DNA of 64,000 bases, from positions 434,001-498,000 of the forward strand of contig NIVC01000291.1 of assembly GCA_002269645.1 (NCBI GenBank), read 5' to 3'. The notes under the pieces were generated by a model, which did no database searches, was not told where the DNA came from, and was given only the letters and a program-made list of their open reading frames with translations. Numbering within the stretch: position 1 is the stretch's first letter; each line of letters begins with the position of its first letter. The position numbers and the translations under genes are program-made. Below are positions 4,638 to 60,993 of this stretch, piece by piece. The DNA is from Macrostomum lignano. Lineage: Eukaryota.

Positions 4638-6050
4638 TATTACTTACTTACTTACTACCGACGGGGGCAGAGCGCCGCGAATAGGCCGCGAGGCCCCTAT
4701 CGCAACCCCAAGCTAAAAACAGAAAGGCGTTAGCCTTGGGGCTGCGACCACCCCTCGCCGGCAGCAGAAGAGCTCGCGAGAGTGGCGTCTGCGATCTTCA
4801 TCCGCCCAGAATCCCGAACGAATGCGCGTAGGTCACGGATCCGGTCCGGAGTGGTGAGTTCGTCAAGCCTTAGCGGATGACCGAGGTGATGCCTCCGCGC
4901 CTCGTTGAAGTGCGGGCAGAAAGTGACGTGGTGCGTCGAGGTTTCCTCTTCTAAATCACAGAATGGGCAGATAGGGGAGCAGCCACTTTGCAGTGAAATG
5001 TCTCTGGAAGAAGCCATGGCCAGTAATGACCATGCACATCTCCCTGAGGTTAGTTTTACTTAAGAAGATTAGATATTCGGATACTTTCCGGTTAATGGCA
5101 GGCATAGCCTTTCGTGCTTGCCGGTATTCGGAGCAGCTGTCCCAGTGAGTCTGATGCTGGCGGTTCAGCCAATCTTGAATGGCGCGGTTGAGCGATGACT
5201 TCGGAGAAGGTAACTTGACTGAGCGTTGCGCTCCATCAGGGGTGCAACCCCGCTTGGCAAGCTGATCCACAAGCTCGTTGCCGAGGATGTTGCTATGGCC
5301 TGGTGTCCAGATAACATTGATCCTGTTGAGAATCGCTAGGGTCTGCAAGCTTTTGAGGCAGTCTGAAACTGACTTGGTTGAGAGCTTGATGGAAGACAAG
5401 GCCTTAATAGCGGCCTGGCTGTCAGAGTAAAAATAAATGTCAAAGCTGCTGATGCCAGCTTTGTGCAAATGCTCAGCGCACTGGTTGATAGCTACAACTT
5501 CGGATTGAAAAACCGAGACATTCTCACCAAGATGAAGACTCTCTTGTAAGATCGCCTCACCCTTGTGGAAAATGGCAATGCCTGCACCAGCGAGACCGTC
5601 ACAAAGGGATCCGTCAGTGAAGCAGTGAATACCTTGGCTTCTCCGGTTGATGCCCACGTCCAGCGGGTGACTCCCTCTCGGTGGAAGAGTACACTTGAAG
5701 CCCCTCCTGAGGATGAGAGTGGGGGATTTGCAGTCCACCTCGTCTAAATTGAGGTGGATGCGTTGAAGATCGCGACGGATGTAGTCCAGATGCGGGAAAA
5801 GAGTCTTCTCGGGCATGAAGCCTGAGAGCATGTTAGCAATAAATTTATCACAGATGAGACGCGTGGCGCCCTTCATCGCCTCAGCTCTAATGAACAAATG
5901 CAGCGGAGGCATGCTGAGGATGGTGTTGAGCCCCTCGTAAGGGGTGGATGGATACGCACCGGTGATGGCTCGGCAGATGTTACCCTGCAGTTGGTACAAC
6001 CGGTCCTTTTGTCGTGTATTACTGGATTCCGCACCGCCTACTTCTAGTAA
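4638..6050 (-). mobile_element. 5'-truncated non-LTR retrotransposon (RNase H-bearing, LOA/I-group-like): post-RT region, RNase H, C-terminal zinc finger, (GTAA)n tail
   Basis: [26 protein letters not shown] is the post-RT motif. RNase H motifs are [25 protein letters not shown] and [19 protein letters not shown]. After a 1-nt frameshift near 4990 comes ITGHG...[24 protein letters not shown] x3 tail lies at ~4638-4657. No RT domain and no TSD were found. Confidence 0.88.
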
Positions 6051-6139
6051 TAGAATGCGGTCCACTGTCTTATATTCCGCTAAAAAATAAGGATTGACAA
6101 GCTGGTGACCAGAGATAATGACTATTTTAACCAAGTGGG

Positions 6140-8125: not shown

Positions 8126-11100
8126 ATGAACCGGAGCCGGGGGTTCGCGCCCGCGACAGCGTCCGCTCTGTGGCTCTGCGTTATTTTCTTTGGCGTGGCT
8201 CTCAACTCAGGTGAGCGGCCGTGTGCGATGCTTGACCTTAAATTGCGTAAGCAGCCAGGGTCTCCATGGGATTGTGCAGGCAGCCAGGGTCTCCATGGGA
8301 TTGTGCAGGCAGCCAGGGTCTCCATGGGATTGTGCAGGCAGCCAGGGTATCCATGGGATTGTGCAGGCAGCCAGGGTTTCCATGGGATTGTGCAGGCAGC
8401 CAGGGTCTCCATGGGATTGTGCAGGCAGCCAGGGTATCCATGGGATTGTGCAGGCAGCCAGGGTCTCCATGGGATTGTGCAGGCAGCCAGGGTTTCCATG
8501 GGATTGTGCAGGCAGCCAGGGTATCCATGGGATTGTGCAGGCAGCCAGGGTCTCCATGGGATTGTGCAGGCAGCCAGGGTTTCCATGGGATTGTGCAGGC
8601 AGCCAGGGTCTCCATGGGATTGTGCAGGCAGCCAGGGTATCCATGGGATTGTGCAGGCAGCCAGGGTATCCATGGGATTGTGGTGCGGAGCAGCCAGGGT
8701 CTCCATGGGATTGTGGTGCGGAGCAGCCAGGGTCTCCATGGGATTGTGGTGCGGGGCAGCCAGGGTTTTGTATGGGATTGGGGTGCGGAGCAGCCAGGGT
8801 CTCCATGGGATTGTGGCCTGGAGGAAAGGCGGGCAGCCAGTGCTTCCAGGGTGTCTATGAGCCATGGATCCAAGGGTCTAAGGAGAGGCCATCAAGGATT
8901 ATTGGGGCTCAGGCCATTATGTGTAGATGGCCTAGGTCATTTTGCTGCAAACAAGGTGAAAAATGCTGTCAGTGGAGCTCGAGGGCCCCCAAGTCTTGAG
9001 GCTCCGGACTCGAGTGACCCCCGAACCCGCCGCTGAACCCGCAGGAGCGCTTGCCATCGAGGCGGCCAAGAAGCTGTTCACGGACCTGATGAACCGCACG
9101 AACTACAGGTCCTATGTGCGCCCCGTGACCAACCACTCGCAGCCGGTGCTGCTGTACATGAACCTCAGCCTCACCCAGATCCTTGACGTGGTGAGCTCGC
9201 GAACGAAATGCTCTCCGGCCTCAGCAACTCCATATCTTGGCATTTTTTCAAATTCCAGGACGAAAAGAACCAGATAGTGACGCTGAACATGTGGGTGTTC
9301 CAGCAGTGGTTCGACCCGAACTTCCAGTGGGACCCGAGCCACTACGGCAGCATCCACGAGCTGCACGTGCCGTCGGACGAAATTTGGACGCCGGACCTGG
9401 TGCTCTATAACAAGTACGGGGTCCGGGCCGCATTCAGCTGCTAAAACCGGCCGTTCAGCGGCCAATACGGTGTTGCTCAACTGCCAATACTCAGTTGCTC
9501 AACTACCAGTTGCTTAACTGCCAGTACTCAGTTGCTCAACTACCAGTTGCTTAACTGCCAATACTCAGTTGCTCAACTACCAGTTGCTTAACTGCCAATA
9601 CTCAGTTGCTCAACTACCAGTTTCTCAACTACCAATACTCAGTTGCTCAACTACCAATATTTAGTTGCTTAACTACCAATACTCAGTTGCTCAACTACCA
9701 ATATTTAGTTGCTTAACTACCAATACTCAGTTGCTCAACTACCAATACTCAGTTGCTTAGTTACTCATTTATCAAATACTCAGCAGCCAAATCCTCATGT
9801 GCACACAACCCCCTTAGCGCCGGTGGCGACTGGGATCTCGGCAGCTCGGCGAACAAGGTGAACGTCCTGAGCGACGGCACAGTGCTGTGGCGGCCGCCGA
9901 TCATCTTCAAGAGCCAGTGCGAGATCAACGTGGAGTTTTTCCCATTCGACACGCAGATCTGCACCCTGAAGCTGGGCACGTGGACCCACAACGGCTACCT
10001 CATCGACCTCCGGCACGTGGCCCAGAAGGCCGAGGCCGACCGGACCGGCATGAAAAACTTCGACAACTGCGAGGCGTTCATCGACTACGCGGTGGACCTC
10101 AGCCAGTTTGTGGACAACGTGGAGTGGGACATCCTTGGTGAGCTGGCTTGATGAGGCTACTCAGCCGGAAGCTGGGAGCTGTTAAATTGAATCAGGTGAA
10201 AACTGGATTATTTTGAAGCTGTTAGATAGAAGCCGTTAGATGAAAGCTGTAGATGGGGCTGGTAGATGGAAGCTGGTAGATGGAAGCTGGTAGATGGAGC
10301 TGGTAGATGGAAGCTGGTACATGGAGTTGGTAGATAGAAGCTGGTAGATGGAAGTTGGTAGATGGAAGCTATTAGATGGAGCTGATAGATGGAAGCTGGT
10401 ACATGGAGCTGGTAGATGGAAGCTATTAGATGCAGCTGGTAGATGGAAGCTGGTACATGGAGCTGGTAGATGGAAGCTATTAGATGGTGCTGGTAGATGG
10501 AAGCTGGTACATGGAGCTGGTAGATGGAAGTTGGTAGATGGAAGCTGGTAGATGGAGCTGGTAGATGGAGCTGGTAGATGGAAGCTGGTAGATGTAAGCT
10601 GGTGGATGGAAGTTGGTGGATGGAAGCTGGTAGATGGAAGCTGGTAGATGGAAGTTGGTGGATGGAAGTTGGTAGATGGAAGCTGGTGGATGGAAGCTGG
10701 TAGATGTAAGCTGGTGGATGGAGCTGGTAGATGGAAGCTGGTGGATGGAGCTGGTAGATGGAAGCTGGTGGATGTAAGCTGGTGGATGGAAGTTGGTGGA
10801 TGGAAGCTGGTGGATGGAAGTTGGTGGATAGAAGCTGGTAGATGTAAGCTGGTGGATGGAAGTTGGTGGATGGAAGCTGGTAGATGGAGCTGGTAGATGG
10901 AAGCTGGTAGATGGAAGCTGGTAGATGGAAGCTGGTAGATGGAGCTGGTAGATGGAAGCTGGTGGATGGAAGTTGGTGGATGGAAGCTGGTGGATGGAAG
11001 TTGGTAGATGGAGCTGGTAGATGGAGCTGGTGGATGGAAGTTGGTGGATGGAAGCTGGTAGATGGAAGTTGGTGGATGGAAGTTGGTGGATGGAAGCTGG

Positions 11101-14100
11101 TAGATGGAAGTTGGTGGATGGAAGTTTGTGGATGGAAGCTGGTAGATGGAAGTTGGTGGATGGAAGTTGGTGGATGGAAGCTGGTGGATGGAAGCTGGTG
11201 GATGGAAGCTGGTGGATGGAAGCTGGTGGATGGAAGCTGGTGGATGGAAGCTGGTGGATGGAAGCTGGTGGATGGAAGCTGGTGGATGGAAGCTGGTGGA
11301 TGGAAGCTGGTGGATGGAAGCTGGTGGATGGAAGCTGGTGGATGGAAGCTGGTTTTCCACAGATTCGCCCCATGTCGAGAGAGCTGCACAGAGAAGCACG
11401 AACTTCATTCAGCTTGGCTTGCAAGTTCCCGCCTGTCCTTCTATTTTCTAAACCAAACCCTGGCAGAGTTCCCCGCCCTCCTCGTTGGAGTTTGCCAAGA
11501 CAGGACCGCCTGACAGCCTGCGCGAACGCCCCCCCCCCTGCTCGTGGATCAGCCAGGCCGGTCAGCTGAGGCCCGCCCGCTTAACCCAAACAGACAGTTG
11601 CCAAATTGGCTCAGCCAGTGAATCGAATCCTGCCGGCTGAATCCCCATCCGCCCTGACCCGCTGCCCGCCCGCCTGACCACCGAGGCAGATGAATAAATT
11701 CGAGCTGCGGAGAAGGAAAATTGCATTTCCGCGATCTCGGCCTAGGGGGGGGGGCAGAAGACCTCCGGGCGGGACCCCCCGGACCTCCCCTCTCTCTCTA
11801 TTAATTAGCGTTTGAAACAGAGGCGCATGGTGGAGGCAAAACTGCTGGGGATTTCCAGCAAATTGAATTGCTGCCGCCCGGCCGTCCCCGGCTGGCAAGC
11901 CGGGTCACAGCCTCGCCCGTCTCGCCTCCTCTTTGCTGGGGCGCCTCGCCGGGTCCTTCGTGTCTCGGGTGTGGCCCGCTGCAAACAGCTCTCTCTCTCC
12001 GGGGGGGATTAGCTGGGCCTTGGAATTCGATCTGGAGTTCCGTGCGGACGCTAATCACATTGATTCGCCTCGGAGAGTGCCGTTTTCCCATTCCCCCCCC
12101 CCTGTCCCGGGCGGCGTCCCTCATCTGGCCAAGGTGAGAGCGGCGGGGCGGGGCAGCAGATTTCCCCGCCGGGAGGATTTGCGCTGGAAACTTTCTGGGG
12201 GCTGGGGGTGGGCGTGTGGGAGATTTTCTCTGATCCCCGGTGCCGGCCCCGGGCAGCTCAGTGGAGCGCCGATTCTGTGTCGGTCGGCCGAGGGGAAACT
12301 TGAGTGGCCGATCGAGCGGGCCGGCCCTTCAGTATGCAAATAATAACAATAAGCATAGGGCCTGGGCTCAATCAATCGGACAGGGACTTAATCATAACTG
12401 CGACCCTCACCCGCCCAGCTCACTCCACAGCTCAGAGCTTTGAGCTCTCTTTGAGGGTGTGCTGTGAGCAGAGCTGCTCCTGCGCTCCCTGCCGCAGCTC
12501 AAATCCCGAAATCTTGGGCGCGGGAGATTTCGATCCAGGACTATTGGAGAGGGAACAGTGCTGGACTGAAAATCACTGCTAACTGTGTATTGGTTAGTAG
12601 CGGCTCTCACTGCAGCTCCCGGGAAGGGACAGCGGCTCTCACTGCAGCTCCCGGGAAGGGACAGCGGCTCTCACTGCAGCACCCGGGAAGGGACAGCGGC
12701 TCTCACTGCAGCCCCCGGGAAGGGGACAGCGGCTCTCACTGCAGCCCCCGGGAAGGGGACAGCGGCTCTCACTGCAGCCCCCGGGAAGGGGACAGCGGCT
12801 CTCACTGCAGCCCCCGGGAAGGGGACAGCGGCTCTCACTGCAGCCCCAGGGAAGGGGACAGCGGCTCTCACGCAGGTCAAATTCGGTTTGTAATTCGCTG
12901 TCTTCTAAGCCTCACGTGACCACCGTCCCGCGCCCAGAGGTGACGGCCAAGAGGAACATCCAGATCTACCGCTGCTGCCCGGAGCCCTACCTGGACCTGC
13001 TGTTCTCGCTGAAGATCCGTCGCAAGACGCTCTTCTACGGCGTGAACCTCATCTGCCCGTGCCTGGCCATCAGCTTCCTCACCATCCTCGTCTTCTACCT
13101 GCCCGGCGACTCTGGCGAGAAGATGTCCCTGTCAATCAACATCCTGCTGTCACTCACCGTGTTCTTCCTGCTCATCTTCGACATCTGCCCACCGACCTCT
13201 CTGGTGGTGCCGCTCATACTCAAGTACCTGCTGTTCACTATGATCCTGGTCACGCTGTCCGTCATGGCCACGGTCATTGTGCTCAACGTGCACTGGCGGT
13301 CCCCGGACACGCACATCATGGCACCCTGGGTTCGCCAGGTGTTCCTGCACACCTTGCCGAAACTGCTGTTCATGAAGAAGCCCGACAACAGGGAGGGCAC
13401 TGAAGATGCCAAGGTTGGTCATTCCTGACCCAATCCAGTTCTTGCTGACCCTTCCTGACCCAATCCAGTTCTTGCTGACCCTTCCTGACCCAATCCAGCC
13501 ATAGACAATTCTTAACCCAGTGACCCATTCTGCCAGCCCAGACCTCTCCAAATCAAATTGAGCAAATCCCGCCATGAGTCAATGAGCCACAATCCTGACC
13601 CACTCCGACCCGCCACCGACACACCGACAGCTCGATGAGCGCGCACCCGGCAGCCTCGGCCAGACGGCGCACCAACAGCAGCCTGGCTGGCAGTTCAACT
13701 GGCGGAGCTTCGACGAGTGTCGCTACGGCGACGGCGGCGGCTGCGGCGAGGTTGGCTGCGACCACGGCATCGCCTGCGACGTCGAGATGGCGCTGACTGG
13801 TGTCAGGAACATCTCCAGCCACTTGAAGTTTCTTGAGCGGAACACCACTGTAAGTTCTGGACCGCTGACCCACTATGCAGTCTCAGTGGTCAGGATAGCA
13901 TGTCCCTGACCCACTATGCAGTCTCAGGGGTCAGGATAGCATGTCCCTGACCCACTATGCAGTCTCAGGGGTCAGGATAGCATGTCCCTGACCCACTATG
14001 CAGTCTCAGGGGTCAGGATAGCATGTCCCTGACCCACTATGCAGTCTCAGGGGTCAGGATAGCATGTCCCTGACCCACTATGCAGTCTCAGGGGTCAGGA

Positions 14101-17532: not shown

Positions 17533-19056
17533 TCAATCCTGCTTGAGCGGCGGCTTGTCGGGCAGCTGCGGGACAGCAAGGCCGTATTGCATGGCCAGCC
17601 TCTTGAACACGGTGATGTGGAAGAATGCCATCAGCACCTCCATGTCCTTCTCGGTGAGGTCCCTCGGGTACTCCTTGCGCTCAATGGTGGTCTTGGAGTA
17701 AATTCCGCCGACGTAGGACTTGGAGTTCTGGATGTACTGCACATTGGGAGCCAGAATGAAGGCCTGGGCAACGTTCACCACAATGACGTTGTACTTGCCG
17801 TCGCCACGGTTGGCGCAAACGACGTCGACGAACTGGACCTTGCTGGTGGAGGACCGGTCAGCGTTGAAGGCGATGTCGAAGTCGTTCCAGGTCTGGGACT
17901 CTGCCATGGAGCCGATGATGATGGCGTCCTCGACGTTCTGGAACACGTCCGCGTTGAGGTTGATGAGCCTGGGTAGAACCCTGAGGTAGGTACCCAGGAG
18001 ATTGTCCATGTTGATGCCGATCGTCACAGAGGTCTTGGCGGTCTGCTCGTAGCGGGAGAAGCCCTCGCCAGCGACCTCCTTGATGATGGTGCTGGTGCTG
18101 GTAGTCTTGAAAATGTTGATCAGCTTCGGGACGATGTCGAGACCAGCGCTGATCAGTCCGATGGCAGTCATGGGGTCAATGTAAGCCTGCTCCATGCCAG
18201 GGACTTCGATGTCCAGCATTCTGGCGAAGCGGCCAAGAGCGGCCTGGCAGAAGAAGGACTTCAGCAGCTCGACATCCTCCAGCTTCAGCTTGGCGGGAAT
18301 GCGCTCAACGCGGATGTTGGCGCGCTGCACCAGACCCCAGGCGTAGCTCTTGCGCTCCTCGATCAGCACGATGTCCGGAGCCAGCTGGAAGGAGCTCTTG
18401 AAGTCGGCAATCATGAAGTCGTAGGTGTTGTGGGCCAAGTCGCGGTGGCCCAGAACGCAGACGTATTTGCAGTTGGAGCCGCTGTCCTGATCGAAGATGA
18501 TATCGATGAGGCTCCAGTCGGTGTTATCAGCGAACTTGATGATCTCCATGCTGGCCAGGAAGCCGTCGCGCTTGTCGTTCTTGATCTCCAGGGTGTCAGT
18601 CAGGTAGGCGGCGAAGGCGTCGAAGCTGTCGGCGTCCACGCCCTCGATGGCCTGCATGGAGGCGGACTGGCTGTAGTGGGTGTAGCCGTTGTTGGTGACC
18701 CTCTGCAGCTCGACCGGCAGGGCGGTGCTCTTCGATTCGATCAGGTTCTTGATGCTCGGGAACCGCTCGGCCCAGGTCTTCAGCTTCGGGCCCAGTCCGC
18801 GGGTGAACGGCTCGGGGTTGCGGTACACTTCATGGTGCTTCGGCTGGAAGTCGTAGCCGTAGTAGTTGGTGGCGCTGAAGGTGTTCTCTGCGAGGTCAGA
18901 GTTGGTAGTGAATGAATGCATTTTGTAAGTTCTTGGTTGTGTTCAAAATACGTAGCAGTCTAAGACATATCTCGACGTAATGCAAATAGATTTGGAGCTG
19001 ATTGACTTACCAGCGGCCGCAAAGGCAGCAAGGGAGAGCAGAATGACGAGCTTCAT
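17533..19056 (-). CDS. Secreted protein of unrecognised family, ~466 aa, with two tandem ~200-aa homologous domains; exons 19056-19011 and 18887-17533
   Basis: Exon 1 is MKLVILLSLAAFAAA (signal peptide) with donor GTAAGT. The acceptor CTCGCAG at 18888 is in frame (phase 1) with the 462-aa ORF. Strong GC3 codon bias. The internal repeat is visible (FQLAPDIVLIEERKSYAWG versus FILAPNVQYIQNSKSYVGG). Confidence 0.85.
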
Positions 19057-20854: not shown

Positions 20855-22110
20855 CTAGGGGCCGGCGGTGCTTTCAGCCATCGGCTCCGGCCGATGCAAC
20901 TCGGTTGGCTCCCCGCCCTGCAGTCCGATAGCTTCGCCATCTTCAGCGGATGCAGTAGCGGCGTCGCCGCCACCGCCGCTCTTGGTATCTTGGCAGCTGG
21001 TCTGCGGCCTTGACAGCATCGCATCGTCGTCTGTGGCGCGGGAGGTTGCCGGATCATCGGCTCCGGCCTCGATGCGTTCACTCAGCTGGTCTGCATGCGC
21101 CAGGACGGTGCGACCGCCTTGACGGGCGATGATGGCCGTGTTCGTCCCTTTTTGCCATAGAAACTCGGCCGGCTCGCGCTCCAGCCCTGCGCCTGGTGCG
21201 TACCAGATGTTGGCTCTAATTGGCGTCTTCATCGTGATTGGATTGCGCAGCTGCCGTCCCATGAGCTGTGCTAGACTCTGGGTCCGACCGGCGTGTGGAA
21301 TGCACCTGTAATTGAGTAGGAGTCTGAACAAGAATGAGTTGTACGGCTCCAACGCTTGGTCCCTGGCCGCCGACGCCCTCTTGATCGAGCCGACCATCCG
21401 TTCCGCAAGTCCGTTCGATTGAGGATGCCTTGGAGGAGTTTTGAGGGCTCGACAGCCGATTCGCTCAAGCCAGGACAGCAGTCCGGCGTCGTGATACTCA
21501 GCGGCATTATCACTAACTAGGACGTGCGGGACACCGTTTCTAGCGAACACTGACTGAAGAGCGGCCTTAACAGTCGCAGCATCGCGGTTTGGCACTCTCA
21601 GGACCTCAGGCCATCCTGACATAGCATCGACTAGAATGAGCACCAGTCCAACCTTCGGGATTGTGGCGTGGTCCATATGCACGCGATGCCACGGCTCGTC
21701 TTCCTTTGGCCACTGATGTACCGTAGGTGTGCCAGAGGGCCGAATTCGCGTGCAGGTGGGGCAGTTGCGTACGTGCCGCTCCACGTCCGTGCAATATCCT
21801 GGCCACCAGGCCGAGTTGCGGATGAGTGCGCGAGTTGCCATGGCTCCCTGATGCGATTCATTGTGGACCTGATCCAGGACGCGCTGCCTGAGTGTCGCAG
21901 GAATCACCGGTCGATCACCGTAGCAGAGAATGCCGTCGTCTATCACTAAGGCATGGCGAACTGATTTTTACAGCCTCTCAGCTGGGGAGCATCCTGACCA
22001 TCTGCTTGATGCGACTCGCTCAGCAATATCTTGGAGTAGACGATCGCGCTGGGTCTCCGCTTGCAGCTCCTCCCATGGAATCACCGGGCTGCCAGCCCAA
22101 TGAACCAGAA
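20855..22110 (-). pseudogene. Element A integrase (with upstream linker containing a premature stop)
   Basis: HHCC zinc finger (VHNESHQG...WWPG...CPTC) and DDE motifs VHMDHA, VSDNA, SNGLAERMV. The upstream frame reads WEELQAETQRDRLLQ...RL*KSVRHALVIDDG. Confidence 0.9.
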
Positions 22111-22561: not shown

Positions 22562-23780
22562 CTAGTCAAACTGAATTCGAATTTTGTTTGTCTCACCACA
22601 AATCTCCACTCGCATTTTTTTCCCTGGTTGCCCAACGCACAGAGGGTCAGATGGAGGCACTGCGTTAACCGACTCACCAGGCTTAGCTGGCACAGCTGAT
22701 CTGGCAAATCCGAGGACGTCTCTAGCAACCTTCTCGTGCCCAACAGAAACTCCAATGTAACGCTCAACGGCTGAGCTGCTGTGGCCGGTAACTCGACAGA
22801 TGTCAGCGTGTTCTACCCCTGCCTCATGCAGCCGGGTCGCGCACGTCTTCCTTAAGCTTTGGTTAGTGTAACGCAGCGTGTCGTCCGGTGCTACTTGACC
22901 CAGGAGCCCCTTGACTGTATTTGCTAGAGTATGACGTCCGATCGGTCCTTTCGTGTACCATTCAGTTCCCGAATTCGGCTTCCAGTTTCTGTTCACTGCA
23001 AGAAACAGCGCCTTTGAGCAGCCACTTGGACGATGACTTACGTACTCCTTGTACGTGCAGACAACACATCTTTCATGGCTAGCTGAGTGAAAACCGCGAA
23101 CGACCTTTGCCTCCGCACGCAGACTCTTCAGACCACCCTGGTTCGTCTTTGAAATTCGATTGTCCTTGAATTCGAGACACTCGTCGCCGTCTGCCATGCC
23201 GATAGTAATCTGTCGATCGAACTCTAGGTCTCTCAGTTCATTCCCCCACGCAAGGCGAAATGCAGACCAATAAGCCAAATGACTGAGTCGCTGAGTTTCT
23301 TAGGTGTAGATAATCCGAGAATGCCTTCGTCCCAAAGCTTGTCCTCGCTTGTACTAGCAATTACCGCAGACCTGTTCAAACCTGCGCCTTTGCCAGCTCT
23401 TGTAGATTCCTTCATAGCAACCTCCAGCGCTTTCCTACTCTCCATGAACTCCTTATCTTTCCAAAGACTCCAGTCTCGCTTTAGTACAGCTTGCAGATGG
23501 AATTGGATCATGGACACGAAATCCTTCAGTGTAGAAGCACAGTACCTCTCACCGTCTTTATTCCTCACCTCAAGAATAAAAAACTTCAATAAATAATTCA
23601 GGTCCGACCTTGACATCTCCGGGAGCTCTTTCAAGACCATCAGAGATTGCCCTCCGCCTTCTGCCCAAGCTATCTTCTTCATGTTGTGCCACTCCTGAAA
23701 CGTTTTCACCATCCATGCAGCTTTTTTCTTCGTATTTTCCGGGTAGTTTTCCTCTATTTTCCGCTCGATGCGGACAAGCT
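22562..23780 (-). mobile_element. Crypton-type (DUF3504/ZMYM-KCTD1-related) tyrosine recombinase, split by a 1-nt frameshift at ~23243
   Basis: N-terminal ENTKKKAAWMVKTFQEW and LNYLLKFFILEVRNKDGERY. Catalytic-region motifs HFALRGG-NELRDL, SKTNQGGL, YTKGPIGRHTL, TNQSLRKTCATRL and TGHSSSAVERY give R-K-(H>Q)xxR-H-Y, which is the Crypton pattern. Confidence 0.88.
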
Positions 23781-24690
23781 GCTGAACCGCGACCTCTGCC
23801 TGTCCGATGGGTCGAAAGCTCTCGCCCGTGTAGGTGCGCAGCACCGTGGATGTCGGCGACAGACGGAGACCCGGCAGAACATCCTCTTGGAGACTCTTCG
23901 GGATGACGGTGAGGGCGGAGCCGGTATCCACCTCGAAGCGACATGGCTTGCCTTGGAGCAGCAGCTCGACCGCCAGACCCTTGCTCGATCCGCTCTGCCT
24001 AATGCTGAAGAGGGGCTCCTGCAGCTCAGCCGGCTCTGGGTCCAACTTGTGCAGCTTTGAAGACCTGCACACCTTGCGGATGTGCCCGACTTTGCCGCAG
24101 TTGTGGCACTTGGCCTCACGAAGCTTGCACTGCTGCCGACTGTGGGCGCCGCCGCAGCTTGCACACGCGCCTGAGGCAGCAGCTGCCCGCATAGCGTTGG
24201 CTTGAGCTCCGGGCGGCTGACGGGGAGCCTGCTTGTTGAGCTCTTTGGGCGCAGTGGGCTTCTTGTGGAGGCGCAGGTGAGCGACTGCTTCGGCACGGTG
24301 CGCCATCTCCGACGACGATTTTTCCGCTGCCTCCAAAGCGTCGACTCTGGCCACGAGCGTCTTGAAGTCGGGCTGTTCGATCTCCAGCAGCTTTGCACGG
24401 TGCACGTCACTGCGGAGACCGAAGACAAACTGGTCGCGCAGTCTCTCGTCCAGATTGCTGATGCAGTGGGATCCGTCTGACCCGTCCAGAGTGAACTCAA
24501 ATTTGCAGTGCTCCGAGGCAGCTTTTAGGCCAGCAATAAAGTCCGCGAGACTCTCGCCGGGCTTCTGCACGCGCCGTTGAAAGCGGAATCTGGCGGATAG
24601 CATTGACGTCTTGGGAGAGTAATGTGCCTTCAAGACAGCAGCTAAGTCTGAGTATGACTTGGAGGTCACCACATCACGCCAGTCAAACAT
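23233..24690 (-). CDS. Chimeric ORF (485 aa): truncated Gypsy-B Gag + aspartic protease fused in frame to the N-terminal half of the Crypton recombinase
   Basis: One stop-free frame contains KSYSDLAAVLKAHYSP, a double CCHC knuckle (CASCGGAHSRQQC, CHNCGKVGHIRKVC) and protease FEVDTGS, then switches at ~23780 to recombinase sequence. Whether it is expressed is unknown. Confidence 0.6.
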   Translation of the reverse strand: MFDWRDVVTSKSYSDLAAVLKAHYSPKTSMLSARFRFQRRVQKPGESLADFIAGLKAASEHCKFEFTLDGSDGSHCISNLDERLRDQFVFGLRSDVHRAKLLEIEQPDFKTLVARVDALEAAEKSSSEMAHRAEAVAHLRLHKKPTAPKELNKQAPRQPPGAQANAMRAAAASGACASCGGAHSRQQCKLREAKCHNCGKVGHIRKVCRSSKLHKLDPEPAELQEPLFSIRQSGSSKGLAVELLLQGKPCRFEVDTGSALTVIPKSLQEDVLPGLRLSPTSTVLRTYTGESFRPIGQAEVAVQQLVRIERKIEENYPENTKKKAAWMVKTFQEWHNMKKIAWAEGGGQSLMVLKELPEMSRSDLNYLLKFFILEVRNKDGERYCASTLKDFVSMIQFHLQAVLKRDWSLWKDKEFMESRKALEVAMKESTRAGKGAGLNRSAVIASTSEDKLWDEGILGLSTPKKLSDSVIWLIGLHFALRGGMN

Positions 24691-24946: not shown

Positions 24947-25903
24947 CTGAACCAGGCCGACCCGCCCAAAGCGCCGGTGCAACCGTGGCCGTTTCCTGCT
25001 GAACCTTGGGCGAGGCTGCACCTGGACTTCGCCGGCCCCGTTAACGGTCGCACGTACCTAGTCATCGTGGACGCCTTCAGCAAGTGGCCGGAGGTTCATC
25101 AGGTGCACAGCGTTACGTCTGCTGCCACCATCGAGCGACTCCGCGAGGTCTTCGCCAGACTGGGCATTCCCCGGGTGTTGGTCTCCGACAACGGCACGCA
25201 GTTCACCTCCGCGGAGTTCGGCGAGTTCACAAGGCGCAACGGCATTCGGCATGTTTTCTTGGCGCCGTTCCATCCGGCAACGAACGGCCAAGCGGAGAGG
25301 TTCGTTCAGGTGCTCAAGCGACATCTACTCAAGAGCGGGCACTCGACGGCGGCACTACAGCGGATGCTGCTGTCCTACCGCAACACGCCGCACTCGATCA
25401 CTGGCGAGGCTCCCAGCCAGCTGCTCATCGGCCGCAGACTGCGCAGTCGGCTGGACCTGCTGATGCCATCGCTGACGAGCAGCATGCAGCAGCACCAAGA
25501 GCGGCAGGTCGAGCAGCAGCCGCATGCGCGCGAGTTTCAAGTCGGCGACCGAGTTCTACTGCGCGACTTCAGCTCCAACGCTAAGGCTGGCGGCGGCACT
25601 CGCTGGGCGGAGGGTAGCGTCGTGTCCGCTAGATCCCGCAACTGCGACGTTGAGGTCGGCGGCGCTCTCCATCGGCGGCACACGGACCAGCTGCTGACGA
25701 GCTCGCTGCCGGAGGCCAACCCGTTGCCACCGGCCGCTGTCTCCGATGAACCGCATTCGCCGCCCACCGAGCAAAGCGAAGGCGACGGCGGCAATGACGC
25801 GCCGCAGGATGACGCGGCCACCGCCGCCGCTGACCGGCCGAGCAGTCCGGCGAGGCGCTACCCGCAGCGTCGAAGGCAGCCACCTGAACGCCTGCAACTT
25901 TGA
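24947..25903 (+). pseudogene. Gypsy-B integrase core and C-terminus (HHCC domain deleted)
   Basis: PPKAPVQPWPFP, PWARLHLDFAGP, VSDNGTQF, TNGQAERFV, TPHSITGEAPSQLLIGR. Joined to the RT fragment by a large internal deletion. Confidence 0.92.
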
Positions 25904-25973: not shown

Positions 25974-26294
25974 TGTCAGATAGCTTAGTTATACGTATGG
26001 CATTGGCCACTTAATAGTTCACTCAGTTAGATTATTATTATTTGTTATTTGATTTTAGTTCTAGTGCACCCTTGCCACCCCAGCGTCGGGGGCTGGAGTT
26101 ATCTAATTCACTTTCTTCTCTCTCTTGTTGGCCAGCGCGGCACCCACCCCTAATCTCAATCTAGTAATTTATGCTGACTAAGTGAATTCAATTTAATAAA
26201 TACTGCGACACCACGCATAAGATTTCGCGTGTGTTTTTCCACTTCCAATTTGCAAATACTAGTCTCGTTTGCGCACTCGGCTCATAACCTCACA
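25974..26294 (+). repeat. 3' LTR of Gypsy-B (solo within this window), ~321 bp
   Basis: Follows PPT AGGGGGGAGA (25964-25973), starts TGTCAG, contains AATAAA (26195), and ends CTCACA where element A's RT is interrupted. Confidence 0.75.
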
Positions 26295-28059
26295 GGACTT
26301 TTGAGTCGATCTCTGAGTCAGATTTTCCGCCGAGAAGAATGTCGTCCTGATAAACTATCTTGCCGGTGATGTCAGTAAGGACAGATTCCATTGCCTTTTG
26401 AAAGATAGATGATGCAGATTTGAGACGCTTATAGCGATAGAGGCCCAAAGGTGTGGCGATGGTGGTGATCTCTCTGCTGTCTTCGTCAAGCTCTATCTGC
26501 AAATATGCATCTGAGAGGTCGATTTTGGAGAAGTGCGACATTCCAGAGGTCTCCGCAAAGATTGTCTCCATCTCAGGCATTGGGTACGTATCATTGCACA
26601 CCTGGTGATTAACTCCTGCCTTAAAGTCAGCACAGACGCGCACCTTTCCGTTAGGTTTCAGCACACTGACAATTGGTGAGGCCCACTGGCTCCCTCCGGC
26701 TGGAACAGGTTCGATTATCTGCTCAGCCTCCATTCGCTTGAGTTCCTCGTTAACCCGGTCTCGCAGGTGAATGGGAACGGGCCTAGCTGCGCAGTAAAAC
26801 GGTTTTGCTCCATCAACAAGGCGAATCTTGGCTTTGAAGTTTTTGAGACATCCTAGCTGGCCGACAGCGTTGATTGTAATAGCGTCCCCTTGCAGCTTGA
26901 TGACGTCCATTCCCAGCAGTCCATGTGGTTTGCTGGCCTCCGTGACGATTAAGTCCAGTGTGACAAAGTTGGTGTCAGTTTCTAGGGAGGCAGTGAATTC
27001 TCCTAGACAGGAAATGCTGGATCCGTCGTACTGCCTGAGTGTTCGCCTGCACTTCCTGAGGGAAGGGCGGCCGAGCTTGACCCACAGATTTTGCGGAAGT
27101 AGACTCACCTCGGCGCCCGTGTCAATCTGCATGGGCAGGGTCCGACCATTGATCTTCGCTTCGTGAAAGAGTCCGGTGCTACGCCCTGGAGCGACCACGA
27201 AAATGTCGGCTGGCTCTTGGTCCTGATTCTCATGATCGCTTGTCGTTTCTTCTTGGGTCAAGTGCACTTCTCTGGATCTGCAGACCGCCGCAAAATGATT
27301 CTTTCGTTTACACTTGGTGCACCTCTGACCAAAGGCTCGGCAACTGCCTTTGGGGTGAGTTGTACCGCAGTAATTGCACCTGCCTTTACCAGCCGCTCCT
27401 GAGGACTTGGCTGCCGCACCGGCCGTTCTTGGTTGACCTGCAAAAGCGATCTCCAGGGGAACGGGCGCGCCTGATGAAGCGGTGTTGGTCGTACCCTTAT
27501 TGTACTGTTGGATTTGCTCGAGCTGCTGCAGGTTTTGCAAGATATCGTCAAGAAGTTTTTCTTCGCCTCGAAGCTGCTCCAAAATTCTCTTCTTGTGTTC
27601 GGGAGAGGCAAGGCCGTCGATTAGCCTCATTGCGATGAGGTCGTTTTCCTTGGACTGCTTGGCCCCAAGTTCCTCGAATTCGCAGAGTGCCGCCGCTGCT
27701 CGAAGCCGACGGTAGTAAGTGCTGATCGATTCACCCGGCTCTTGTTTGAGGCTTAGAAATCTGGTGCGTTCAGCGATGACCAGCCTTTTCTTAGGCCGGA
27801 TTGTTGCTGTTGCTAGTGTCTCGATTTCGCTAAATTTGAATGCCTCCAGCTTTTTTGGTGCAGCCATCAGAGAGAGCGTCCGGATCGCCTGTAGTCCAGC
27901 CTTTGATAGGAACAAGTCAGTCTTATCCCGCGCTTCGTCCGTGTCCGTAAGTTTCTTAATGCGGGCCGTGGCGGAGAGCTGCTGCATCCATGCCTCAGCG
28001 AGTTCAGGATCGTTGAGGTTGAGTTCTTGACTCCGAATTTCGCCTGCTTGCGACGCCAT
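26295..28059 (-). pseudogene. Element A gag-protease-RT (N-terminal half), interrupted by the Gypsy-B LTR
   Basis: Double knuckle CNYCGTTHPKGSC and CTKCKRKNHFAAVC; protease MQIDTGA; RT WASPIV, RVCADFK, KIDLSDAYLQ, YQDD. The usual PFG motif is missing (YKRL-KSASSIFQ). Confidence 0.92.
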
Positions 28060-37690: not shown

Positions 37691-38369
37691 TTCTGATCCT
37701 CAGTGCTCAAAGGCCACAGTATCGAGGCAGCGAATACCGGTCCTTTCGCACTCCTTGGCCCGGGTTCTGCTTGTGTGAGCCGGGGCAAGGGAGTTTCTCT
37801 TTCCGCTCTCTGTCTCCCTCTCCCATGGGAGCCCATTGATCATCGGGCATCGGTCAGAATGAGATCAAGCACGCTGTGCTATCAGGGCTGCGCATGCATT
37901 TACAGTTTGTTTAACCCTAATTTGCTTTCCCTTGCTTCTGCCTGGCCTGCGAGTATCTATGTGGCCTGATCTCCAACCGACCCTGCGTATGCGGCGACCA
38001 GTGGGATCCAGCATAGACCCGGGGTGTCCGCCTGACGTCTGTGCGCCTGTCAACCGGTGTCCGGAGTCGATTGCTCATAAATCATTCCTTGCCGACTGTC
38101 GCCCCTTCAGCCTATGAGTGCTGTAGGCTGTGGGCTGAGAACTGTGCTCAAATTATGCTCACTTTAGATTACTTCTGTCTGTCGGCTATGCGGACCTTCC
38201 GAGGGCTCGATTTATCTTGCCTGCGGCATCAACTCGGATTTGTCTGGAGCTGCCACACATTTCTCGACTTGCTTGGCTGCTCTGGCAGCTTTACTTTGTT
38301 GGATGCACTCCCATGGCCGCCTCAGGGGCTTCTGCTAAGTTTGACGACCCATCTAGCCCCTCGATCTTA

Positions 38370-39845
38370 TCTTCCCGCATCTCAACCTTTATCTCCTCTC
38401 ATTTTCCTGCATCTCACCCTTTATCTCCTCTCATATTATCTTCCCGCATGTCACACTTTGTCTCATCTCTCATCTTCCCGCATCTCACCCTTTATCTCCT
38501 CTCATCTTCCTGCATCTCACCCTTTATCTCCTCTCATATTATCTTCCCGCATGTCACACTTTGTCTCATCTCTCATCTTCCCGCATCTCACCCTTTATCT
38601 CCTCTCATCTTCCCGCATGTCACCCTTTATCTCATCCCTAATCTTCCCGCATCTCACCCTTTATCTCCTCTCATATTATCTTCCCGCATGTCACCCTTTG
38701 TCTCATCTCTCATCTTCCCGCATCTCACCCTTTATCTCATCCCTCATCTTCCCGCATCTCACCCTTTATCTCCTCTCATATTATCTTCCCGCATGTCACC
38801 CTTTGTCTCATCTCTCATCTTCCCGCATCTCACCCTTTATCTCATCCCTAATCTTCCCGCATCTCACCCTTTATCTCCTCTCTCATCTTCCCGCATCTCA
38901 CCCTTTATCTCATCCCTAATCTTACCGCATCTCACCCTTTATCTCATCCCTCATCTTCTCGCATGTCACCCTTTGTCTCATCTCTCATCTTCCCGCATCT
39001 CACCCTTTATCTCCTCTCTCATCTTCCCGCATCTCACCCTTTATCTCCTCTCTCATCTTCCAGCATTTCATCCTTTATCTCTTTCTCATCTTCCCGCATC
39101 TCATACTTTATCTCCTCTCTCATCTTCCCGCATCTCATCCTTTATCTCCTCTCATCTCCCCGCATCTCACCCTTTATCTCTTTTCTCATATTCTCGCATC
39201 TCACTCTATCTCATCTCTCATCTCCCCACATCTCACCCTTTATCTCTTTTCTCATATTCTCGTATCTCACTCTATCTCATCTCTCATCTCCCCGCATCTC
39301 ACCCTTTATCTCTTCTCTCATATTCTCGCATATCATCCTTTATCTCTTCTCTCATCTTCCCGCATCTCATCCTTTATCTCTTCTCTTATCTTCCCGCATC
39401 TCATCCTTTATCTCATCTCTCATATTCCCGCATCTCACCATTTATCTCCTCTCATCTTCCCGCATCTCACCCTTTATCTCATCTCTCATCTTCACGCATC
39501 TCACCCTTCATCTCATCCCTAATCTTCCCGCATCTCATCCTTTATCTCCTCTCTCATCTTCCCGCATCTCATCCTTTATCTCCTCTCTCATCCCGCATCT
39601 CACCCTCTATCTCCTCTCTCATCTTCCCGCATTTCACCCTTTATCTCCTCTCTCATCTTCCCGCATCTCACCCTTTATCTCCTCTCTCATCTTCCCGCAT
39701 TTCAACCTATATCTCATCCTAATCTTTCCGCATCTCACTCTGTATCTCCTCTCTCATCTTCCCGCATCTCACTCTTTATCTCCTCTCTCATCTTCCCGCA
39801 TCTCATCCTTTATCTCTTCTCTCATCTTCCCGCATCTCACTCTTT
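38370..39845. repeat. Degenerate pyrimidine-rich repeat (TCTCATCTTCCCGCATCTCACCCTTTATCTCC)
   Basis: Directly visible; source of the Ser/His/Leu/Pro-rich spurious ORFs. Confidence 0.92.
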
Positions 39846-40742: not shown

Positions 40743-41812
40743 TCATAGGCCAGTTTGAGACTAGGTCATAGGCCAGTTTGAGACTAGGTCATAGGCCAGT
40801 TTGAGACTAGGTCATAGGCCAGTTTGAGACTAGGTCATAGGCCAGTTTGAGACTAGGTCATAGGCCAGTTTGAGACTAGGTCATAGGCCAGTTTGAGACT
40901 AGGTCATAGGCCAGTTTGAGACTAGGTCATAGGCCAGTTTGAGACTAGGTCATAGGCCAGTTTGAGACTAGGTCATAGGCCAGTTTGAGACTAGGTCATA
41001 GGCCAGTTTGAGACTAGGCCAGTCTGAGACTAGGTCATAGGCCAGTCTGAGACTAGGTCATAGGCCAGTTTGAGACTAGGTCATAGGCCAGTTTGAGACT
41101 AGGCCAGTCTGAGACTAGGTCATAGGCCAGTCTGAGACTAGGTCATAGGCCAGTTTGAGACTAGGTCATAGGCCAGTTTGAGACTAGGCCAGTCTGAGAC
41201 TAGGTCATAGGCCAGTCTGAGACTAGGTCATAGGCCAGTTTGAGACTAGGTCATAGGCCAGTTTGAGACTAGGCCAGTCTGAGACTAGGTCATAGGCCAG
41301 TCTGAGACTAGGTCATAGGCCAGTCTGAGACTAGGTCAAAGGCCAGTCTGAGACTAGGTCATAGGCCAGTCTGAGACTAGGTCATAGGCCAGTCTGAGAC
41401 TAGGTCATAGGCCAGTCTGAGACTAGGTCATAGGCCAGTCTGAGACTAGGTCAAAGGCCAGTCTGAGACTAGGTCAAAGGCCAGTCTGAGACTAGGTCAT
41501 AGGCCAGTCTGAGACTAGGTCATAGGCCAGTCTGAGACTAGGTCATAGGCCAGTCTGAGACTAGGTCAAAGGCCAGTCTGAGACTAGGTCATAGGCCAGT
41601 CTGAGACTAGGTCATAGGCCAGTCTGAGACTAGGTCAAAGGCCAGTCTGAGACTAGGTCAAAGGCCAGTCTGAGACTAGGTCATAGGCCAGTCTGAGACT
41701 AGGTCATAGGCCAGTCTGAGACTAGGTCATAGGCCAGTCTGAGACTAGGTCAAAGGCCAGTCTGAGACTAGATCATAGGCCAGTCTGAGACTAGGTCAAA
41801 GGCCAGTCTGAG
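40743..41812. repeat. 23-bp minisatellite (GAGACTAGGTCATAGGCCAGTTT/TCT), ~46 units with an internal 85-bp higher-order repeat
   Basis: Period of 23; a 16-bp truncated unit recurs at 41013, 41098, 41183 and 41268. Confidence 0.96.

Positions 41813-42628: not shown

Positions 42629-60993
<18,365 letters not shown>

Follow-up and report, generated by a model that had tools for sequence, protein, structure and literature searches.

What does a gene encode that stands alone among repeats in a flatworm genome and for which no protein family can be named? The gene in question lies on the minus strand of a 64,000-nucleotide (nt) stretch of the Macrostomum lignano genome (GenBank assembly GCA_002269645.1, contig NIVC01000291.1, positions 434,001 to 498,000), hereafter the window, and a first-pass annotation had proposed its product as a candidate cytolysin. 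The analysis presented here identifies a real gene for a two-domain protein of what appears to be a mostly secreted eukaryotic family with at least 450 sequence clusters, predicts a domain fold for which the closest matches are giant-virus proteins, and tentatively favors a non-catalytic role in binding membrane or lipid. All coordinates are window positions 1-64,000.

Gene structure and coding potential

The coding region runs from start to stop over exactly 17533-19056 (-), in two exons that encode 466 amino acids (aa; Table 1). The list of open reading frames (ORFs) contains a 462-aa ORF at 18921-17533 (-), and translated as a whole the region opens at 19056 with what looks like a signal peptide, which a stop in frame separates from the long ORF; that stop is removed because it is carried by a GT-AG intron. 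The donor side reads ATGAAGCTC...GCCGCTG followed by GTAAGT, the acceptor side ...CTCGCAG followed by AGAACACC, and splicing from 19011 to 18887 leaves 46 + 1355 nt, a sum divisible by three, which puts ENTFSAT in frame directly behind the signal peptide MKLVILLSLAAFAAA. The very same 466-aa sequence is already deposited in GenBank as PAA86220.1 ('hypothetical protein BOX15_Mlig009159g3', Macrostomum lignano), and a 99%-identical copy, Mlig009159 g1, is found on another scaffold. Independent support for the splice comes from an intron-less, transcript-like contig of 1.5 kb (L001; one JGI sample and one SRA assembly), which encodes a 466-aa protein, 82% identical to the window protein, with the same splice junction. 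At its 5' end PAA65952.1, a partial product in GenBank, includes translated leader (untranslated region) from ~19089, as would be expected if transcription began ~30 nt downstream of the TATA-like box TATATATAA.

The gene is real. Between it and the 82%-identical sequence of L001 the ratio of nonsynonymous to synonymous substitution rates (dN/dS) is 0.20, at a dS of 0.50, which indicates a reading frame under purifying selection. Codon usage is strongly biased, with a GC content at third codon positions (GC3) of 0.88 and an effective number of codons (ENC) of 31, compared to a GC3 of 0.57-0.77 in nearby transposon ORFs; bias this extreme indicates very high expression, and judged by codon usage the window gene is probably highly expressed. 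The TATA promoter, the strong codon bias and the compact structure with an intron free of satellite, all read by the first-pass annotation, were thus recovered in full. A chance origin from the satellites around it was rejected for the ORF, which contains no tandem repeat, has the dN/dS given above and has homologues.

It should be noted that an older 887-aa model in UniProt, A0A1I8F1J1 (P0005), contains the window protein under the name 'Lipase_3 domain-containing protein'. This model changes frame ~20 codons before the stop and then runs into other sequence. It looks frameshifted or fused, and its name is therefore not transferable to the window gene.

Domain architecture and age of the duplication

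The mature protein has 451 aa (50.9 kDa, pI 5.3) and no N-glycosylation sequon, and none of its four cysteines belongs to a family-wide pair. The signal peptide recognized in the first-pass annotation has an AxA cleavage site, between MKLVILLSLAAFAAA and E, from which we infer an extracellular product. Cleavage would leave an N-terminal tail outside the repeat that is fast-evolving (50% identity to the 82%-identical relative) and modeled at a predicted local distance difference test (pLDDT) score of 29-40 in the full-length model; this tail is probably disordered.

The remainder consists of two tandem domain copies, as had been proposed. The halves, of ~205 aa each, align with 26% identity over 195 aa (BLASTP, E = 3e-18), and all five motif pairs of the earlier alignment are in register. 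Both copies carry G.GF at the turn between strands b1 and b2, W..D..F, GG.CKY, F.LAPD at the b5-b6 turn, S..GG at the b6-b7 tip and P..(L/I)T..D....FF....K.FA in helix a3. The motifs tolerate variation within the gene itself, as seen in LAPN and KSYAWG; the Asp of LAPD is replaced by Asn in copy 2, and the K/S/R positions vary. Copy 2, the 'terminal' subtype, is the form that occurs alone in single-domain relatives. The best matches of copy 1, the 'first-position' subtype, are the first copies of two relatives, P0006 and P0008 (39% and 33% identity, respectively), and copy 2 is 32% identical to the second copies of the same proteins. Each copy is closer to its equivalent in relatives than to its partner, and the duplication is therefore old. 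A recent internal duplication was rejected on the same comparison, since these cross-protein identities exceed the 26% between the gene's own copies. A second copy of the gene was not found within the 64-kb window.

A family across eukaryotes

Pfam and PDB sequence searches with the window protein returned no match, and a word-indexed search of the whole protein against 5.8 billion proteins returned Macrostomum sequences only; the word-indexed search with a profile of 69 diverse domains (17-31% identity to domain 2 of the window gene) returned only nine proteins. An exhaustive HMMER search with a four-row domain profile, in which hits are counted as representatives of 50%-identity clusters, recovered 450 representatives at E ≤ 1e-3, 277 at E ≤ 1e-10 and 26 at E ≤ 1e-30. 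Both halves of the window protein match the family profile end to end (positions 1-204 and 1-212). The orphan status implied by the first-pass annotation gives way to at least 450 sequence clusters across eukaryotes, and its remark that no family could be named stands, with nothing found in Pfam, NCBIfam or PDB sequences. Pfam searches of 20 full-length relatives and Pfam and NCBIfam searches of the 69 isolated domains gave no consistent match, the 69-sequence profile had no match among PDB sequences, and no known domain co-occurs with the family domain among the relatives scanned. Over the 69 domains only Gly, Phe and Pro reach ≥90% conservation in any column, and no polar residue is invariant.

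Among the best 149 of the 450 representatives, one copy of the domain is present in 118 proteins, two in 30 and three in a single protein, the 833-aa P0096, for which the domain table gives three matched stretches. The last copy ends ≤15 residues from the C-terminus in 136 of the 149, and by a crude heuristic 96 of the 136 members that start with Met have a signal-peptide-like N-terminus. Many single-domain relatives have a low-complexity, pro-region-like spacer after the signal peptide, and one relative (P0007) has a C-terminal membrane anchor. Nearly all relatives originate from environmental assemblies or transcriptomes, and the only named sources among the 20 looked up are M. lignano and the predatory protist Ancoracysta twista (EukProt). 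Eukaryotic genes on the contigs of relatives (HECT, mitochondrial carrier, Ras and WD40) together with a contig GC content that ranges from 24% to 66% imply that the family is spread over very different eukaryotes. Relatives occur in many protists, and the family appears, from its sequences, to be old, eukaryotic and mostly secreted. Scans of the relatives' contigs for tRNAs that would indicate a ciliate genetic code found no tRNA.

Several relatives depart from the common architectures. An extra N-terminal region of ~200 aa with four conserved Cys is present in P0006, P0007, P0011, P0012, P0015, P0158 and others. HHalign places this region against the second half of the domain (probability 76%, E 2.3e-5), and its Cys pattern, of the C...C......C.C type, is not present in canonical copies; the extension of these three-part relatives looks like a third copy that has degenerated. 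A single 790-aa protein (P0112) has a marginal arthropod-defensin-like match (Pfam PF01097, E 0.0011, 19.3 bits, below the 20.4 cut-off) at residues 544-571, between two domain copies. An identical 239-aa single-domain relative (P0180) is found on 24 contigs; its loci L004-L009, from six JGI and ENA samples, have ~24% GC and fragmentary Ras and WD40 genes, which suggests a eukaryote with a very AT-rich genome, common in some habitat that has been sampled well.

Predicted fold

Copy 2 alone was modeled with AlphaFold2 from the 69-sequence alignment, with a mean pLDDT of 89.7 and a predicted template modeling score (pTM) of 0.70. The predicted domain starts with helix a0, followed by the b1-b2 hairpin, the helical hairpin a1-a2, a five-strand meander (b3-b7) and the long helix a3. 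The most conserved stretch of the family is the region of the b6-b7 hairpin (consensus F.LAPD..I..S..GG), and the KSYxxG segments, which had been taken for protruding beta-hairpins, were correctly placed, as KSYVGG forms the tip of the predicted b6-b7 hairpin. The b1-b2 hairpin has K/E at alternating positions. When compared to the 82%-identical relative, a0 (90%) and a3 (100%) are among the best-conserved elements and the a1-a2 hairpin is the fastest-evolving (56%).

The leading helix bears on the first-pass annotation, which had each domain led by an amphipathic helix, with that of the second domain looking lytic. The helix itself is predicted, and its amphipathic lytic character was not confirmed: a0 of copy 2 (PMTAIGLISAGLDIVPKLINI) is hydrophobic, with a hydrophobic moment (muH) of 0.32, a mean hydrophobicity of 0.52, a net charge of 0 and a pLDDT of 77-82. 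The family medians for a0 are a moment of 0.41, 33% Gly/Ala/Ser/Thr and 16% charged residues; first-position copies, including copy 1, instead have a charged leading helix with FP.(I/L)K. Helix a3 of copy 2 (EKDMEVLMAFFHITVFKRLAMQ) has a muH of 0.07 and, being hydrophobic on every face, is probably a buried core helix.

Foldseek comparison of the copy 2 model to 350,542 PDB chains gave no match at E ≤ 1e-3. Rows for MHC class II (template modeling score, TM, 0.13-0.16) and GFP were rejected as noise, with TM 0.1-0.2. In BFVD, only uncharacterized giant-virus proteins match. As far as the searched libraries show, both the family and its fold are undescribed, with the fold judged by Foldseek on one predicted model. 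A full-length AlphaFold2 run with 19 two-domain sequences gave a low-confidence model (pLDDT 66, pTM 0.51) that had no Foldseek match in the PDB, and due to its low pLDDT no conclusion is drawn on the packing of the two domains. The segment b1 of copy 2 and its equivalent in copy 1 form a strand in the single-domain model and two short helices in the full-length model, a discrepancy that could be an artifact of alignment depth or a real structural ambiguity.

Paralogs and their expression

The tail plate holds prostate, adhesive and cement glands. A second group of M. lignano paralogs consists of Mlig000053.g1 and Mlig000053.g3 (P0008 and P0155; PAA93599.1 and PAA78934.1) and Mlig031413.g1 (P0156; PAA93605.1), the last of which shares an 893-kb scaffold with Mlig000053.g1. 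These paralogs and the environmental P0006 share both domain subtypes of the window gene and their order, with 32-39% identity between first copies and 31-32% between second copies. Unlike the window gene, most of them have the extra N-terminal region with four conserved Cys. In the rows for these genes in the supplements of Brand et al. (2020; PMC7336406), positional RNA-seq counts, with columns taken as head, testis, ovary and tail, are 0/0/0/353 for Mlig000053.g1, labeled 'Tail', and 0/9/39/549 for Mlig000053.g3. By these entries the expression of the three-part paralogs Mlig000053.g1/g3 is tail-restricted.

Functional interpretation

A non-catalytic secreted protein that binds membrane or lipid is the reading that we tentatively place first, because the domain has two hydrophobic helices without a conserved disulfide, because one relative is membrane-anchored and because the predicted fold recurs in giant viruses. 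The lack of an invariant polar residue over the 69 domains argues against catalysis. Under this model, each domain would keep two hydrophobic helices, the small-residue-rich a0 and the all-face hydrophobic a3, against an antiparallel sheet, with no conserved disulfide lock. The secreted protein would bind something hydrophobic outside the cell, and the likeliest candidate is a membrane or lipid surface that belongs to a prey organism, a microbe, a gamete or a mating partner. Once bound, it would expose or insert a0 and a3, and a pore is one form that this could take.

A number of observations weigh against such a role. In the searches run here the protein resembled no known membrane-active protein in either sequence or fold, it is acidic, and a0 is weakly amphipathic and not cationic; moreover, helices that pack on a sheet are always amphipathic, so this feature of a0 discriminates poorly. 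That a0 and a3 are buried and that the domain has no cavity is deduced from the periodicity of the residues only, and the full-length model, in addition to its low confidence, renders b1 as helix. Finally, the codon bias and the tail expression of the paralogs fit an abundant structural or reproductive secretion equally well.

Such a secretion is the first alternative, one that we consider somewhat unlikely: the protein would be an abundant structural or matrix component of a glandular product (rhabdite or mucus, adhesive, cement or shell, or seminal fluid) that self-assembles or binds secreted partners and has no membrane activity. Beyond the codon bias and the tail-restricted paralogs, this would agree with an acidic protein that has no conserved catalytic residue, with the pro-region-like spacer of many single-domain relatives and with the variable number of domain copies per protein across the family (1 to 4), a variability common among matrix proteins. 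However, the domain is a compact globular fold, lacks the repeats, cross-linking motifs and Cys/Tyr/Gly-rich composition typical of adhesive and matrix proteins, and has a predicted counterpart in giant viruses that is hard to explain for a gland matrix protein.

It is unlikely that the protein is a soluble carrier, similar to START/Bet v 1 or BPI-like proteins, with a lipid or other small hydrophobic molecule held in each domain between helices and sheet. Its element order (a-b-b-a-a-b5-a) is presumably reminiscent of a helix-grip fold, the tandem arrangement of two secreted ~200-aa alpha/beta domains resembles BPI/LBP, and the protein has no catalytic residues. Yet no START, Bet v 1, TULIP or lipocalin chain was found by Foldseek, and the muH of a3 suggests a filled core and not a cavity lined by an amphipathic helix.

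Extending the membrane- or lipid-binding reading, the domain might be the founder of a structural class of its own, whose members insert into membranes to form pores or drive fusion and serve phagotrophic and predatory protists as well as giant viruses. The Macrostomum lineage would have retained the domain or acquired it horizontally, duplicated it and deployed it in gland secretions for defense, prey handling or sexual conflict; as a whole, this scenario is improbable.

An enzyme of an unrecognized class is very unlikely. Secreted alpha/beta proteins of this size are often hydrolases, but only Gly, Phe and Pro columns reach 90% over the 69 domains, the Asp of LAPD is not kept in copy 2 and there is no match to enzyme families; a housekeeping or enzyme fold, which by the first-pass annotation would have refuted a cytolysin, was sought by sequence and by Foldseek and not found. 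The least credible explanation, that the protein has diverged from one of the known families of pore-forming toxins (Cyt/volvatoxin, actinoporin or aerolysin-like), would suit a Cys-poor, secreted protein with a presumed loose likeness in element order to Cyt-type cytolysins, but faces no Pfam toxin match for the window protein and 69 diverse relatives, no PDB sequence match with the family profile and no Foldseek match at E ≤ 1e-3. The step to a cytolysin in the first-pass annotation is not supported and the idea stays a guess: Foldseek found no pore-former fold with the copy 2 model, and the leading helix is a conserved part of the domain and neither cationic nor strongly amphipathic.

Whichever reading holds, the family of at least 450 clusters, mostly secreted and with no Pfam model, solved structure or described function, deserves a database entry that would connect hundreds of 'hypothetical' proteins. 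M. lignano is tractable for assigning a first function, as RNA interference, in situ hybridization, transgenesis and positional RNA-seq exist for this animal. A membrane-active protein would bring a new fold to the repertoire of pore-formers and fusogens and connect the secretory biology of protists, giant viruses and animals; a structural or reproductive role in secretions would still make it a new building block of flatworm gland products.

Genomic surroundings

The gene stands alone among minisatellites (52 rows in Tandem Repeats Finder, TRF) and retroelement fragments on both strands, and this neighborhood is without bearing on its function. The scattered ORFs of long terminal repeat (LTR) retroelements carry Integrase_H2C2 + rve, rve, gag-aspartyl protease + RVT_1, and RNase H domains. 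A 485-aa ORF matches QRICH1 exactly at the gathering score (30.8 bits), with weaker, below-threshold matches to DUF3504 and an aspartyl protease, a combination more in keeping with a Crypton-like or domesticated recombinase-related element than with a host gene. Minisatellite units in the window are 14-60 bp long. The largest satellite in Table 1 produces spurious ORFs of >1,340 aa in three frames, other TRF arrays lie at, for example, 10215-11353, 38365-39845 and 40743-41812, and most of the long 'ORFs' listed in the window read through minisatellites.

Table 1. Positions of the gene, its predicted structural elements and neighboring features in the window
Feature	Window position	Strand	Copy 2 residues	Basis or remark
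TATA-like box TATATATAA	19115-19123	-		58 nt upstream of ATG; direct sequence reading
Exon 1, 46 nt	19011-19056	-		ATG and signal peptide MKLVILLSLAAFAAA; phase-1 donor
Intron, single, 123 nt	18888-19010	-		GTAAGT...CGCAG; 39% GC; without tandem repeat or satellite
Exon 2, 1355 nt	17533-18887	-		Encodes mature protein; stop codon 17535-17533
Mature N-terminal tail, residues 16-43	18805-18887	-		Outside repeat; fast-evolving
Domain copy 1, residues 44-253	18175-18804	-		'First-position' subtype, FP.(I/L)K helix motif; hmmsearch domain table
Domain copy 2, residues 255-466	17536-18171	-		'Terminal' subtype; hmmsearch domain table
Helix a0, PMTAIGLISAGLDIVPKLINI	18112-18174	-	3-23	Hydrophobic, small-residue-rich, net charge 0; DSSP of model
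Strand b1	18073-18102	-	27-36	
Strand b2			41-57	
Helix a1			58-72	
Helix a2			77-91	
Strand b3			98-106	
Strand b4			114-124	
Strand b5			129-143	
Strand b6			146-156	
Strand b7			161-171	
b6-b7 hairpin	17668-17745	-		KSYVGG at tip; LAPN b5-b6 turn before
Helix a3, EKDMEVLMAFFHITVFKRLAMQ	17587-17652	-	177-198	C-terminal, 22 residues, hydrophobic all round
LTR-retroelement fragment ORF	20855-21946	-		
LTR-retroelement fragment ORF	24977-25903	+		
LTR-retroelement fragment ORF	26290-28059	-		
LTR-retroelement fragment ORF	4956-6134	-		
485-aa ORF	23233-24690	-		QRICH1 match exactly at gathering score
27-bp satellite	54606-58241			~135 copies, 98% identity; TRF

Comparison with known systems

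The likenesses to Cyt-type, START and BPI-like proteins discussed here concern element order or architecture only, and each failed the sequence or fold tests. Cyt-type cytolysins and volvatoxin A2 share with the window domain what we take to be a loosely similar order of helix or helices, beta-hairpin, helical hairpin and beta-meander, and both are small, Cys-poor, secreted alpha/beta domains. Unlike the Cyt-type, the window domain is tandemly duplicated, and its last element is a helix of 22 residues, hydrophobic all round. The Cyt/volvatoxin A2 family (PF01338) had no match for the window protein, for the 69 relatives searched singly or for the profile against PDB sequences. The first-pass annotation had named actinoporin, Cyt/volvatoxin and aerolysin as pore-forming folds for comparison, and none was matched by sequence or Foldseek; no Cyt/volvatoxin, actinoporin, aerolysin or MACPF chain is among the Foldseek top 50 of the PDB chains. 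Actinoporins (PF06369; no Pfam or Foldseek match) combine a beta-sandwich with two helices, whereas the window model has four helices, two of them of 21-22 residues, and a single meander sheet. Aerolysin/ETX-MTX2 and MACPF/CDC also gave no Pfam or Foldseek match, and the b1-b2 hairpin with its alternating K/E is unlike the uncharged, Ser/Thr-rich insertion loop of beta-pore-formers.

Among carriers, the START/Bet v 1 helix-grip presumably comes close in the number of its elements and in how they follow one another (a, b-b, a-a, b-meander, long C-terminal a). These folds, with hundreds of chains, and TULIP and lipocalin are very numerous in the PDB, though none was matched by Foldseek, and neither START/Bet v 1 nor TULIP was matched in Pfam; because a3 is not amphipathic, a ligand cavity of the START/Bet v 1 type is unlikely. 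BPI/LBP/CETP proteins are, like the window protein, secreted and built from two homologous ~200-aa alpha/beta halves in tandem; no match was found to Pfam LBP_BPI_CETP, and no structural match to a BPI-like TULIP.

The nearest annotated things are equally uncharacterized, namely the M. lignano paralogs by sequence and giant-virus ORFs by predicted fold. Pattern scans for relatives in IMG/VR gave no confirmed match, and the giant-virus proteins are not recovered at sequence level. Weaker BFVD matches are to Edafosvirus A0A3G4ZYQ2 and Borely moumouvirus A0A6G6ADX5. With both sides being predicted structures, the giant-virus proteins are similar in size (206-266 aa) and only 10-12% identical. Three of them, Hyperionvirus A0A3G5A862, Terrestrivirus A0A3G4ZN21 and A0A650DA38, match at E 1.6e-7 to 7.6e-7 (probability 1.00, TM 0.57, 195-210 aligned columns) and have the same predicted fold as copy 2 over essentially the whole domain.

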